Below are positions 20,092 to 63,883 of a stretch of DNA of 64,000 bases, one piece after another. The number at the start of each line of letters is the position of its first letter. The first letter of the stretch is position 1. The translations under genes and the position numbers were made by a program. A model generated the notes under the pieces. The model was not told the DNA's origin. It ran no database searches and worked only from the letters and a program-made list of their open reading frames with translations. This stretch comes from Octopus sinensis (Eukaryota): assembly GCF_006345805.1 (NCBI RefSeq), contig NC_043019.1, positions 25,915,360 to 25,979,359 of the forward strand, written 5' to 3'.

Positions 20092-20232
20092 ATTGTCTTG
20101 ATCAAAATGAACATTGTCCTTATTGGGCCAATAACGGTGAATGTGACAAGAGCCAGAAATACATGTATTACAACTGTAAGAAATCTTGTCAGTCGTGTGA
20201 CTCCCCGCCTCCCAATCCAGAAGTAATGGAAT
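20092..20232 (+). CDS. Gene A ShKT exon 1 (CLDQNEHCPYWANNGECDKSQKYMYYNCKKSCQSC + DSPPPNPEVME linker)
   Basis: GATTTCAG acceptor, GTAAGT donor, 141 nt, phase 1-1, open frame, six Cys in ShKT spacing C-x6-C-x8-C-x10-C-x3-C-x2-C. Confidence 0.92.
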
Positions 20233-21103
20233 GTAAGTTTATCTTTGGCTTCTTCTACCCCCATCTTATTAAACTCTCCTGCTCCACCCGTTTTCTACTG
20301 TTGTTTTTAGCTTTTTTGTTTCTTTGAAAAGTATCGACATATTTATGAACAAAACACCCTCCAAATATTTCATAGCAAAAGGAATTTTACAAATGGCCTT
20401 TGGGATTGGTGTTGATTTGGGAATCGTGAGTAGAGTACTCGGAGTTTCTCTGAAGCAACGGCTATGAAGTTATTCATCATTCTCTAAAATGTGTGTGTAT
20501 AGGTGTGTCTGTGCAAAAGTTGAATAGCAAAAAACCTTTTTTCTTTCGTACTATTCTTCCAAAAACAAATCTCGAAATTACGCCCTCAGGGAGAATACAA
20601 CAGGTGTAAAACCACACAGGTATTCTATTTTTAATATGATATGAACGTTGATATGGGGCAGAGCTGGCAGAATCGTTAGCACGCCGGGCGAAATGCGTAG
20701 CCGTATTTCGTCTGCCGTTACGTTCTGAGTTCAAATTCCGCCGAGGTCGATTTTGACTTTCATCCTTTCGAGGTCGATTAAATAAGTACCAGTTACGCAC
20801 TGGGGACGATGTAATCGACTCAATCCGTGTGTCTGTCCTTGTTTGTCCCTTCTGTGTTTAGCCCCTTGTGGGTAGTAAATAAACAGGTATTTCGTCTATT
20901 TTCACCTTTTCAATTCAAATTTTGCCGGGGTTCATGTTGCTTTCATCCATTCAGCGTCGTCAAAGTAACTACCAATTGAATTCTCGTGTCGATGTAATTG
21001 TTGTTGTATTTGCTGCTGTTGTTATTTCTGTCGTCATCGTTGTTGTTGTTGTTGTTGTTGTTATCAATATTATTGTTATTGCTGTTGTTCTGGTCGATTT
21101 CAG

Positions 21104-21244
21104 ATTGTCCTGATCAAAATGAACATTGTCCTTATTGGGCCGATAACGGTGAATGTGACAAGAGCCCTAAATACATGTATTACAACTGTAAGAAATCTTG
21201 TCAATTGTGTGACTCCCCGCCTCCCAATCCAGAAGTAATGGAAA
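21104..21244 (+). CDS. Gene A ShKT exon 2 (CPDQNEHCPYWADNGECDKSPKYMYYNCKKSCQLC + linker)
   Basis: GATTTCAG acceptor, GTAAGT donor, 141 nt, phase 1-1, intact ShKT cysteine pattern. Confidence 0.92.
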
Positions 21245-21959
21245 GTAAGTTTATCTTTGGCTACTTCTACTTGGTTGACAGTCACATTTCTTGCTCCACC
21301 CGCTTTCTACTTTTCTTTCTTTTTTGAAAAGTAACGAGATATTTATAAACAAAATGTAATAGTGACACCCTCCAAATATTTCATAACGAAGGGAATTTTA
21401 CAAATGGCCGTTGGGATTGGCCTTGGTTTGGTAATGGTGGGTAGATTACTCGGAGTTCCTCGCAAGCAGTGGGTGTTAAGCTTTTCATCATTCTCCAAAA
21501 TGTGTGTGTTTTTTCGCGCAACTTGAATAGAAAATATCCCGTTTTCTTTCGTTATCCCCTTACAAAAACAAATTTTGAAATTACGCCCTCGGGGAGAATC
21601 CAACAGGTGTAAAACCACACAGGTATTTTCTCTTTAATATAATATGAATGATGAAATGGCACCGAGCCGGCAGTATCGTCAAAACACAGGGAGAAATGCT
21701 TAACAGCATTTCGTTTGTTTTTACCTTTTCAATTCCAATTTTGCCGAGGTTCATGTTGCTTTCTTCCATTCGGCGTCGTCAAAGGAACTATCAATTGAAT
21801 TCTCGTGTCGATGTAATTGACTTATCCCAACCATCGAAATTATGTGCCTTGTGTTAAATTTGAAACCATGCGCGGCGGACTTACATGCGGAGCAGTTTGC
21901 ATGCATCGGGGGCTGGCATGCGTAGCGTTTTGCAACATGCAGCATACAGCGCCATGCCA

Positions 21960-22400
21960 TTTGTTCTTTCCAGATATCTAATATTTTCCTGATTATTCTG
22001 GCTGTTCCAATTAGTCAAACCTCTTGTACAATTTCTACTGGGTACCCTATTCTGATTTTCTTCAAATTCCCCTTGATTCCTTCTGTTGCTTTCAACAATA
22101 ACTGGCACTATCTTCACCTTCTTGCTTTACTATAACCAAGCTATTTCCTACATAAAATGATTGTATATAGATGTAATTTTTCGCCTTCTTTCTTCACTAT
22201 TTTTATGTCAAATTAGAAGACAACATCAACTATATATCACATGTGGTGCTTCTTGTCCACCACAATTATGTCCCTTCTTTATTGCACTTGCACCTGATCT
22301 GTTTGGAATGGAAGATTCAGAGGTTTTTGCAGGATTCACACTCCACCACTCTCTGAGGCTTGGTTTCATACCACGTCTTGTCTCTCTCTAACACCCACAC
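21960..22400 (-). mobile_element. R4/Dong-like LINE 3' (REL endonuclease) fragment; homologous copies at 25955-26405 and 60350-60785
   Basis: Minus-strand VKIVPVIV...IGTARIIRK-type C-terminus; three copies share the same breakpoints and the preceding GCATGC/TGCAGCC tract. Confidence 0.7.
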
Positions 22401-61900: not shown

Positions 61901-62166
61901 TATGATGCTCCCCCACTACTTCTGCTCGTGATCAGAGATGCACATATCGTCAGCCACTAAGGGACATGCTCAACTGGTTAAGGTCAAACAACTGACAAGC
62001 AAATCTGTGGTATTGAGCAGAATATTTGCTGTAGCCCATCTTATTATTATTATTATTATTATTATTATTATTATTATTATTATTATTATTATTATTATTA
62101 TTATTATATTATTATTATTATTATTATTATTATTATTATTATTGTGACTGTTGTTGTTGATTTCAG

Positions 62167-62307
62167 ATTGTCGTGATGAAAATGTTGATTGTCGTTACTG
62201 GGCCGCTACCGGAGAATGTAAAACTAGTGCAGAGTTCATGAATAAAGAATGTAGGAAATCTTGTCAGTTGTGTAAGTCCATGCACCAAACTCAACCAGCA
62301 GTTGATG
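62167..62307 (+). CDS. Gene B exon 3: ShKT domain CRDENVDCRYWAATGECKTSAEFMNKECRKSCQLC + KSMHQTQPAVD linker
   Basis: GATTTCAG acceptor, ATG|GTAAGT donor, 141 nt, phase 1-1, intact cysteine pattern. Confidence 0.92.
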
Positions 62308-63772
62308 GTAAGTTTACCTTTGGATTCTTCTACCCGGTTGTCATTCACTTTTCCTGCTCCACCCGTTTTCTACTGTTGTTTCATTTAAGAAGTAACGAGA
62401 TATTTATAAACAAAATGTAACAGAAACACCCTCCAGCTATTTCATAGCGAAGGGAATTTTACAAATGGCCGTTGGGATTGGCCTTGATTTGGGAATGGTG
62501 GGTAGATTACTCGGAGTTTCTCGCAAGCCACGGGGTGGGTGTATGTGTGTGTGTGTGTGTGTGTGTGTGTGTAAAACTTGAACGGCAAAAATCCCATTTT
62601 ATTTCATTTTCTTCTTATGATAAAAATATGTTCACACCACGCCCTCGGAGAGAAACCAACAGGTGTAAAACCACACAGGTATTCTCTCTTTAATATATGA
62701 ATAATGGTAGAGAGGCAGGTTGGATGACTCGTTAGCATGCCAGGCAAAACGCTCGGCGGCATTTCGTTCATCTTTAAGATCTGAGTTCAAACTCCGCCGA
62801 GGTCGATATTGCCTTTCATCCTTTCGGGGTCAATAAAACATGTACCAGTGGTCAATGCAATTGATTTAACCCCACCGCCACCAGAAGTTGCTGGCCTTCT
62901 GCCAAAATTTCAAAACCATTACTATTATTATTATTATTATATTATTATTATTATTATTATTATTATTATTACTATTATTATTATTATCATTATTATTATT
63001 ATTATTATTATTATTATTATTATTATTATTATTATTATTATTATTATTATTGAGTGAGAGAGCAGCGCATGCCATCAAAGTGACACTGGATTAAAATATA
63101 CGAAGCCCAGTATACCCATCATAACCACCCGTCTGATAAGGGTACACCAGGCACATGCATCACAACCATATGTGCGCGACATGGTGATCTCATATCAAGG
63201 TAAACAGCGCATGACCTTGCAGGTGGGGCCCAGTTAGAATTTTCTTCAGGTCGAGTAGCCCATCCCGCTCAAAATGTCCCTGAATAAGGGTTGTTTAAGG
63301 ATGTTGAAAGAACCACCCATGTTTCCAGAGGTGAATTATTCAAACCCCAAAGAATCCCTCTCAACACATGGCTATGATGCTCCCCTGCTACTTCTGCTCG
63401 TGATCAGAGATGCACATATCGTCAGCCACTAAGGGACATGATCAACTGGTTAAGGTCAAACAACTGACAAGCAAATCTCTGGTATTGAGCAGAATATTTG
63501 CTGTAGCCCATCTTTTTATACCAAAACAAAATAATGTACATGATAACACTTCCAATCAGTTAAGATCAGAAGCCATGAGAGCCACTGCCTTGTACTGCAT
63601 CAGAGCATTTAGTATTTATTTTTGTTGTTGTGGGTGGTAGTGTTGGTGGTGATGGTGGTGGTGGTGGTGGTGGTGTTATTATTATTATTGTTGTTGTTGT
63701 GGGTGGTAGTGGTGGTGGTGGTGGTGGTGGTGTTATTATTATTATTATTGTTGTTGTTGTTGTTGATTTCAG

Positions 63773-63883
63773 AATGTCTTGATCAACATAAGAAGTGTCC
63801 TCATTGGGCCTCTGTCGGAGAATGTGACAAGAATCCGAAATACATGCATAAGTACTGTGAAAAATCTTGTCAGTTGTGTGAAG
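63773..63883 (+). CDS. Gene B exon 4: ShKT domain CLDQHKKCPHWASVGECDKNPKYMHKYCEKSCQLCE (gene continues beyond the window)
   Basis: GATTTCAG acceptor, AAG|GTAAGT donor, 111 nt, phase 1-1; absent from the ORF track; followed by the same conserved intron block as the other ShKT exons. Confidence 0.92.

Follow-up and report, generated by a model that had tools for sequence, protein, structure and literature searches.

Here we report the analysis of a 64,000-nucleotide stretch of the Octopus sinensis genome (contig NC_043019.1, positions 25,915,360 to 25,979,359 of the forward strand), referred to below as the window, which carries two arrays of exons encoding ShKT domains. In six of the seven domains a Lys-Tyr pair (K-Y) occupies the column of the functional dyad of the sea anemone potassium channel toxin ShK. 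The dyad is present, but nothing marks it as a selected channel-blocking site; the arrays descend from the ShKT tail of an astacin metalloprotease gene, and their units share codons, splice sites and introns with one another.

Two ShKT exon arrays and their astacin relatives

A six-frame scan of the 64-kb window identified exactly seven six-cysteine ShKT units, all on the forward strand: A1 to A5 in the array named gene A, and B1 and B2 in the array named gene B (Table 1). The Pfam family PF01549 matched five and two domains with expectation values (E) of 3.6e-30 and 8e-19 and scores of 104.7 and 68.4 bits, the gathering cut-off being 20.9 bits. All 42 Cys codons are present with the family spacing 6/8/10/3/2. 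Every ShKT exon is preceded by the acceptor tttcag and followed by the donor GTAAGT, and each has a length that is a multiple of three (141 nt in six of the seven, 111 nt in B2). As all seven are of phase 1-1, they can be joined in frame in any number. The linkers between the domains are proline-rich, of the type D-S-P-P-P-N-P-E-V-M-E, and contain no dibasic sites; the domains are encoded in series and would be parts of one multi-domain protein rather than free single-domain peptides of ~35 residues. In A1 to A5 and B2, K-Y stands at Cys3+5/+6 within a 10-residue Cys3-Cys4 loop. The first-pass annotation had placed the cluster at 20092-63883, which are the outer limits of the first and last ShKT exons; the motifs that it quoted were all found in the sequence, S-Q-K-Y being that of A1, and B1, which it had set apart for its E-F pair, is indeed the exception.

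Gene B was analysed by mapping the exons of the nas-13-like astacin locus of Octopus vulgaris (L001, product P0161) and comparing them with the window. The signal peptide encoded by exon 1 of gene B is identical to the N-terminus of both the O. vulgaris astacin and O. bimaculoides LOC106871202; window positions 56686-56796, comprising translated 5' untranslated region (UTR) and signal peptide, correspond to residues 104-140 of the RefSeq protein XP_014773035.1 with 100% identity. The next exon of gene B, exon 2', is the homologue of astacin exon 2 minus 21 nt, an in-frame deletion. Since exon 2' runs from phase 0 to phase 1, it brings exon 1 into frame with B1, and exon 1, exon 2', B1 and B2 form a single open frame with canonical splice sites. 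Use of B1 and B2 as cassette exons spliced straight to exon 1 was ruled out, as exon 1 ends in phase 0 and B1 begins in phase 1. The product would consist of the signal peptide, 10 residues, a ShKT domain with E-F, an 11-residue linker and a ShKT domain with K-Y, and would continue past the window.

Collinearity between L001 and the window leaps from exon 2 directly to the unit of ShKT exon 3 (Table 1). The propeptide and catalytic exons, which lie at 15-30 kb in L001, have no counterpart in the window in this comparison, and tblastn searches of the window with the O. vulgaris and O. sinensis parts of the astacin catalytic exons gave chance matches only (E at least 0.35). The region that should contain the zinc-binding motif of the astacin catalytic domain is therefore missing between exon 2' and B1, and the homology to astacin-ShKT genes extends over the signal-peptide exon, exon 2, the C-terminal ShKT exons and the terminal exon. 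Judged by its exon structure, gene B is an astacin paralogue without the protease part. As far as the window reaches, the gene model has nothing but ShKT domains and their linkers after the signal-peptide part; its product would be secreted and of the 'beads on a string' kind.

Gene A comprises A1 to A5, five copies of the last full astacin ShKT unit, followed by a decayed terminal exon. This exon, a homologue of the one that ends the nas-13-like astacin gene of O. vulgaris, has a stop codon at the position of the conserved Trp, has lost the Cys3 codon, and shows a 26-nt deletion downstream relative to O. vulgaris; LOC106871202 holds an intact copy of the same terminal domain. The 3' flanks of gene A (window 34286-34836) and the O. 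vulgaris gene (L001 44195-44734) match as well. No paralogue of the 5' region of gene B was found upstream of gene A. Because the sequence upstream of the scaffold gap that lies before A1 is possibly non-contiguous, the window allows no judgement on the 5' end of this gene; gene A may be the tail of a full astacin gene or a further ShKT-only gene, and the gap can hide upstream exons. The picture of two genes given by the first-pass annotation had to be amended: it lacked the signal-peptide exon and short exon 2' of gene B, and the decayed terminal exon and missing visible 5' end of gene A.

In the annotated O. vulgaris astacin itself, the product stops early in the last ShKT-like exon (L001 ~42566-42700 against window 30718-30860), with a change of frame relative to the window, and the L001 DNA past this early end still resembles the remainder of a ShKT domain. 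The early end may stem from a genuine truncation or from an indel in the assembly.

Table 1. Features of the window, with matching segments of the O. vulgaris astacin locus L001
Feature	Window position	Strand	Details
ShKT exon A1, gene A	20092-20232	+	phase 1-1; loop D-K-S-Q-K-Y; K-Y = AAA TAC at 20157-20162
ShKT exon A2, gene A	21104-21244	+	loop D-K-S-P-K-Y; K-Y at 21169-21174; domain used for AlphaFold2 model
ShKT exon A3, gene A	22994-23134	+	loop G-E-N-P-K-Y; K-Y at 23059-23064
ShKT exon A4, gene A	24832-24972	+	loop D-M-S-P-K-Y; K-Y at 24897-24902
ShKT exon A5, gene A	27892-28032	+	loop G-K-N-P-K-Y; K-Y at 27957-27962
Gene A terminal ShKT exon, decayed	30718-30752	+	acceptor ...tttgcag; reads P-CIDENTQCAT-stop
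Gene B exon 1, coding part	56722-56790	+	signal peptide MALVRACVSLLLIALFYNYATVQ; donor CAG/GTAAGT; phase 0
Gene B exon 2'	58889-58919	+	31 nt; VSAYSDFANS + one base; phase 0 to 1; canonical ag/gt sites
ShKT exon B1, gene B	62167-62307	+	loop K-T-S-A-E-F; E-F at 62232-62237; most divergent unit
ShKT exon B2, gene B	63773-63883	+	loop D-K-N-P-K-Y; K-Y at 63838-63843; short linker; gene continues past window
Conserved intron start, ~110 nt, after B1 (example)	62308-62417	+	
Other copies of the intron start	20233-20342, 21245-21354, 24973-25082, 28033-28100, 63884-64000		also from 23135 (A3, first part only); L001 39820-39929
Collinear block, exon 1 region	56589-56956		L001 9870-10234; 96.7% identity
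Collinear block, intron 1 + exon 2	58140-58979		L001 12532-13367; 89%
Collinear block, ShKT exon 3 unit = B1 unit	62068-62572		L001 39580-40087; 81%
Collinear block, following intron	62918-63689		L001 40932-41711; 90%
Scaffold gap, 100 N	19404-19503		590 bp upstream of A1
Interspersed element copies	23398-23932 (+), 24210-24669 (-), 26737-27258 (+), 60987-61577 (+), 62984-63629 (+)		L001 17872-18452, 41005-41586
Interspersed element copy	61576-62142		inverted relative to 24096-24632
Transposon debris	935-1228 (+), 29929-30243 (-), 33186-33503 (-), 46881-47553 (+), 50051-50359 (-)		mariner-type transposase fragment (PF01359, E 3.6e-17) and several reverse-transcriptase fragments (PF00078)

Among annotated proteins, O. 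bimaculoides A0A0L8HE40 (RefSeq XP_014773035.1, LOC106871202) is the nearest, with 49-74% identity to the window domains; a collection of 5.8 billion proteins contained none with the window ShKT exons. A search of the window for the propeptide exon of LOC106871202 found nothing, even when relaxed to E 1000 and a word size of two letters, and the five ShKT domains of that gene are not there either. As this propeptide is missing, gene B is not simply LOC106871202. Two explanations are possible: the latter is one more paralogue whose first exon is identical, or the public models fuse this exon to exons of a downstream paralogue, skipping exon 2', B1 and B2. No genomic locus for A0A0L8HE40 was on record by exact-product look-up. 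The first 103 residues of XP_014773035.1 come from the end of an astacin-like gene that lies upstream (two ShKT pieces), with translated read-through of the conserved intron start behind it; 5' UTR sequence belonging to the signal-peptide exon, again translated, then precedes the real start Met. By its sequence, the RefSeq model looks chimeric. In a distance tree built on 35 residues, and weakly resolved, A1 to A4 group together, A5 stands beside domain 1 of LOC106871202 (N-Y) and B2 beside domain 4 (I-Y).

Fold, toxin dyad and background frequency

The first-pass annotation had proposed that K-Y lies exactly at the position of the ShK dyad, and the alignments bear this out: in six of the seven domains the pair falls in the same column, with the same loop length, as the toxin dyad. 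HMMER aligned A2 without gaps over 35 residues to BmK1 (PDB 2MCR), the C-terminal domain of a metalloprotease, with E 3.6e-8 and with K-Y on Lys23/Tyr24, which is reported to superimpose on Lys22/Tyr23 of ShK (PMC9699480). The half of the domain from Cys3 to Cys6 also aligned without gaps to the anemone channel toxin Aer3a (7OD2), with K-Y on K-Y; this match was restricted to the C-terminal half (residues 16-36). An AlphaFold2 model of A2, made from a 40-sequence alignment, has a predicted local distance difference test score (pLDDT) of 94.6 and consists of three helices, with K-Y at the start of the third; the modelled domain would thus adopt the small helical ShKT fold. In a Foldseek search its best PDB match was again BmK1 2MCR, with a template modelling (TM) score of 0.87, a root-mean-square deviation of 1.0 A and 54% identity, followed by the hookworm peptide AcK1 (2MD0).

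Likeness to the anemone toxins is limited to the C-terminal half of the domain. The N-terminal half has loops of 6 and 8 residues, the canonical domain spacing, like BmK1 and MMP23. Type 1 anemone toxins carry Lys-Tyr, and in addition Ser, after Cys3. Ser, the third determinant of these toxins (PMC13608440, PMC10496531), is encoded by AGC two residues before Lys in A1 (20151-20153), A2 (21163-21165) and A4 (24891-24893), and the resulting S-x-K-Y triad is also that of type 1 anemone toxins and of BmK1. ShK also uses Arg11 and Arg24 (PMC10496531). Position 24 is the family-wide, structural Met in all seven window domains, and neither the rest of the channel-binding cluster of ShK (Arg11, His19, Arg24; PMC10496531) nor its compact N-terminal half was found in them. 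The net charge of the A1 to A3 cores is 0 or -1, and these cores are flanked by acidic, proline-rich linkers; A4, A5 and B2 have charges of +2 to +4. Three features argue against a potency like that of ShK: the acidic-to-neutral charge of A1 to A3, the presence of Met where ShK has Arg24, and the tethering of several domains in one protein. Nor is the dyad by itself decisive, being not necessary in MMP23 and not sufficient in an Oulactis peptide (PMC6409789).

The background frequency of the dyad was estimated with a profile of the seven domains, which retrieved 6907 proteins at E <= 0.001 among 1.84 billion representatives. The best 150 representatives and the first hits provided 741 domains with a 10-residue loop, a sample that approximates the full PF01549 alignment. 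Lys occupies the dyad column in 45 of these 741 domains (6.1%) and K-Y is found in 23 (3.1%). The column is highly variable, its commonest residues being G, D, A, E and S. The aromatic position is Y, F or W in 90% of the 741 domains and the next residue is Met in 95%, so the caveat in the first-pass annotation that the aromatic-Met pair is generic was well founded. In the column of the Ser before Lys, the consensus is Asn (81% of the background domains) and Ser makes up 3.5%.

Proteins with an astacin zinc motif have Lys in the dyad column in 11 of 187 domains (5.9%), as against 34 of 554 (6.1%) in all others. Lys at this column is no signature of a toxin and is no rarer in enzyme tails. For the K-Y pair, astacin tails show a somewhat lower frequency (2/187 against 21/554), as their aromatic residue is more often Trp or Phe. 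The first-pass annotation had accepted that an equal frequency of the dyad in enzyme accessory domains would count against its functional claim; the outcome is near to this. Carriers of K-Y include a nemertean von Willebrand-A matrix protein (5 of 11 domains), a haptophyte DnaJ protein, proteins of a freshwater snail and of corals, a diatom ShKT protein clustered with a prolyl 4-hydroxylase and also, in the O. vulgaris astacin, the first of the ShKT domains. A further search with a 47-column profile gave 21 short proteins, with K-Y in 2 of 17 domains. In the domains of LOC106871202 the dyad column is N, S, I, I and V.

A Lys at the dyad position thus occurs at an ordinary lysine frequency (~6%) in all contexts, among them enzymes, matrix proteins and algae.

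Descent of the units from one exon and its intron

The window ShKT exons share more than their coding sequence. The introns that follow six of the seven begin with a conserved stretch of ~110 nt, of which the intron after A3 keeps only the first part (Table 1), and the same intron start is found after ShKT exon 3 of O. vulgaris, not after exons 1 and 2. This common intron start indicates that all window units are copies of that exon-intron unit. In several pairs the intron start is more conserved than the exon (B1/B2 0.95 over 60 nt against 0.69 for the exon; A4/B1 0.88 against 0.69). No Rfam family matched either the intron start or the whole window, and consensus folding of the intron start gave no convincing structure (-0.66 kcal/mol, 7 pairs). 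The intron start may be a splicing control element or an alternative read-through or 3'-end region.

The codons tell a similar story. K-Y is encoded by AAA-TAC in all six domains that carry it. Among these six, 15 of 35 codons are identical at the nucleotide level, and only 2 of the 17 codons with an invariant amino acid show any synonymous difference. Four of the 18 columns that vary in the family are invariant in the six (Q4, P9, K22 and K30). Under random substitution at the observed divergence, K22 would survive in all six with P ~0.17, computed on a star tree, which overstates independence. The corresponding probability for the cysteine framework in all seven domains is ~5e-10. The 105-nt cores differ from their consensus by 3-26 substitutions, yet all 42 Cys codons, all 14 splice sites and every frame are intact, with no stops. 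Pairwise ratios of nonsynonymous to synonymous substitution (dN/dS) range from 0.18 to 0.76, and the individual tests are weak (p 0.03-0.56).

We conclude that purifying selection acted on the disulfide framework while the units were being duplicated, and it is for this framework, not for Lys, that maintenance by selection is demonstrable. Treated as independent draws, the K-Y pairs would exceed chance at a background of 3.1%, but the notion of seven such draws was rejected, the codons, introns and splice sites being common to the domains. The K-Y pairs in six of the seven domains amount to one to three evolutionary observations, and inheritance from one or a few ancestral exons was shown to be sufficient to explain them. 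The first-pass annotation had taken the invariant Lys as the informative residue for a functional dyad. The analysis does not support this argument: the domains are recent tandem copies in which Lys is retained no better than common descent would predict (P ~0.17), Lys is as frequent in enzyme tails as elsewhere, and the closest relatives lack it. Repeats within one tandem exon array should be counted as roughly one observation, which calls for caution when toxins are called from sequence only.

Interpretation, known systems and genomic surroundings

We consider it probable that K-Y was inherited by exon duplication in secreted multi-ShKT proteins, whose modules are units for extracellular binding, perhaps with a weak block of Kv1-type channels. 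The tandem cluster descends from a metalloprotease gene of the astacin type (M12A, nas-13-like), and every unit of the window is a copy of the last full ShKT unit of that gene (exon plus ~110 nt of intron). Gene B has kept the signal-peptide exon and a shortened exon 2 and lost the propeptide and catalytic exons, so that the ShKT exons follow directly, and gene A is a five-fold amplification of the unit, ahead of a decayed terminal exon. Six copies would carry K-Y through inheritance from one or a few ancestral exons. The most likely role of the modules is extracellular binding, as in astacin-ShKT and multi-ShKT proteins from other molluscs. Through the exposed Lys, Kv1-type pores could be blocked weakly, at micromolar concentration, in the way shown for the isolated BmK1 domain, which blocks Kv1.3 at low micromolar concentration only and became nanomolar after five changes toward ShK (PMC5401880).

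Several points weigh against this account. Octopuses are venomous predators. All six K-Y domains of the window have K in a column where the six domains of the closest paralogues have N, S, I, I, V and D; no other column splits so cleanly, and this could reflect constraint on Lys in the window genes. The combination S-x-K was found in none of the 741 background domains, yet it is present in A1, A2 and A4. No start, propeptide or catalytic exon of gene A was found in the 20 kb upstream, a stretch interrupted by the gap at 19404-19503, and the reading as a secreted protein comes from the gene structure. Finally, ShKT-only proteins are specific to the salivary gland in a predatory snail (PMC6409789).

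Some of these points, namely the complete K versus non-K split from the closest paralogue, the S-x-K-Y triad and the salivary ShKT-only proteins of a predatory gastropod, would be expected if the K-Y domains were K+-channel-blocking toxin modules of octopus saliva or venom, with Lys under selection as a pore plug in the manner of ShK, BgK and BmK1 and B1 inactive or directed at another target. The exact dyad position, the closeness of the A2 model fold to a proven Kv1.3 blocker (PMC9699480) and a signal peptide that, with the enzyme part deleted, leads almost straight into the ShKT domains of gene B point the same way. We nevertheless regard such a role as unlikely, given that the retention of Lys is unremarkable and without synonymous turnover, that the linkers are without processing sites, and that A1 to A3 have neutral or slightly negative cores and acidic linkers. 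All domains have Met at position 24, where ShK has Arg24 (PMC10496531); BmK1, with an S-P-K-Y-M motif too, achieves only a micromolar block (PMC5401880), and the dyad is insufficient in the Oulactis peptide (PMC6409789). In addition, no predicted or transcript-derived protein with these exons was found in the 5.8-billion-protein collection.

The absence of both genes from the annotated and assembled protein sets searched would also be consistent with gene A, and possibly B1 and B2, being untranscribed or decaying relics of a segmental duplication, with K-Y then having no present function. The unfound 5' exon of gene A in the 20 kb upstream, its decayed terminal exon, the public models of the neighbouring locus that skip exon 2', B1 and B2, and the individually weak dN/dS tests fit such relics. 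The intact Cys codons, splice sites and frames (P ~5e-10), in spite of the substitutions in each core, make them distinctly improbable, as do the complete and in-frame start of gene B and the scaffold gap, which can conceal upstream exons of gene A. Very doubtful, in our estimate, is a scheme in which an astacin ShKT tail was turned into secreted, catalytic-domain-less multi-ShKT proteins whose Ser-x-Lys-Tyr modules block the K+ channels of crustacean prey by way of saliva or venom. If it were true, the locus would offer a third independent recruitment of the ShKT dyad after those of sea anemones and parasitic worms, with exon amplification and loss of the protease exons visible side by side. 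A functional Lys-Tyr pair would bring cephalopods into the group of animals that turn the ShKT fold on K+ channels, and would illustrate in a genome how a toxin-like protein can arise from the accessory domain of an enzyme.

With inheritance by exon duplication as the preferred explanation, both genes belong to known kinds, the astacin-ShKT derivatives and the multi-ShKT proteins of molluscs. The gain at the locus is one of annotation: two unannotated ShKT genes, of which gene B is a clear astacin paralogue without catalytic exons, as far as its exons indicate.

BmK1, from an astacin-like metalloprotease of Brugia malayi (2MCR), is the best match in sequence and structure and shares the cysteine spacing, the S-P-K-Y-M motif and its origin as an accessory domain of the astacin lineage. 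It differs in being the single C-terminal domain of an intact nematode enzyme, with a measured Kv1.3 block in the low micromolar range (PMC5401880). The O. vulgaris nas-13-like astacin (P0161) shares the identical signal peptide, the collinear 5' region, the phase of the ShKT exons, the intron start, the terminal exon and K-Y in its first ShKT domain. It possesses exons for the propeptide and the catalytic domain but only three full ShKT exons (K-Y, A-Y, A-Y) with a truncated tail, where the window has no catalytic exons and five plus two copies of the third unit. LOC106871202 (A0A0L8HE40), with a 100% identical first exon, is likewise an astacin-derived, catalytic-domain-less, secreted multi-ShKT protein with P-N-P-rich linkers; unlike the window genes, it has its own propeptide exon and five ShKT domains that lie outside the window, with N, S, I, I and V instead of K in the dyad column.

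Among proteins of other animals, multiShKL of the predatory mollusc Cumia reticulata also consists of a signal peptide, proline-rich low-complexity linkers and 2-4 ShKT domains only; it is specific to the salivary gland, and Cumia generally lacks the Lys-Tyr dyad (PMC6409789). The anemone type 1 toxins (ShK/BgK type) have an identical Cys3-Cys6 spacing and the same Lys-Tyr positions, with Ser before Lys as in A1, A2 and A4 (PMC13608440). Unlike the octopus domains, which are tethered in series, have Met24 and, in A1 to A3, are not basic, these toxins occur as free peptides of ~35 residues whose N-terminal half is shorter. The ShKT domain of human MMP23 (2K72), the second-best PDB match by sequence, is again a metalloprotease accessory domain and modulates Kv1 channels (PMC6409789, PMC10496531); it has Arg-Leu at the dyad column and is a weak match (E 0.013). 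The literature on ShKT proteins of cephalopod saliva or venom yielded only a CAP-ShKT fragment of Hapalochlaena and, for O. bimaculoides, a count of the ShKT repeats of astacins.

The window as a whole is AT-rich (~39% G+C) and dense in microsatellites and transposon fragments, one of the latter being situated between A5 and the terminal exon of gene A (Table 1). An interspersed element of ~460-580 bp, with copies that are 85-96% identical, occurs in both orientations in the introns that separate the ShKT exons, as well as in the astacin gene of O. vulgaris. The exon units were amplified by unequal recombination, which this element probably promoted.

Two near-identical open reading frames (ORFs) of 115 codons, at 12772-13119 (+) and 32727-33074 (-), lie 20 kb apart on either side of gene A and gave no Pfam match; as the second adjoins the reverse-transcriptase fragment at 33186-33503, the pair is probably the 3' part of a retroelement. 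Long tri- and tetranucleotide microsatellites (1597-2417, 6377-6918, 15689-16237, 38972-39999 and 40276-40668) yield spurious ORFs of 90-325 codons composed of poly-Y/C/T/L/H/I/D. Pyrimidine-rich trinucleotide runs are also present just upstream of each ShKT exon, where they form the polypyrimidine tract of the acceptor.

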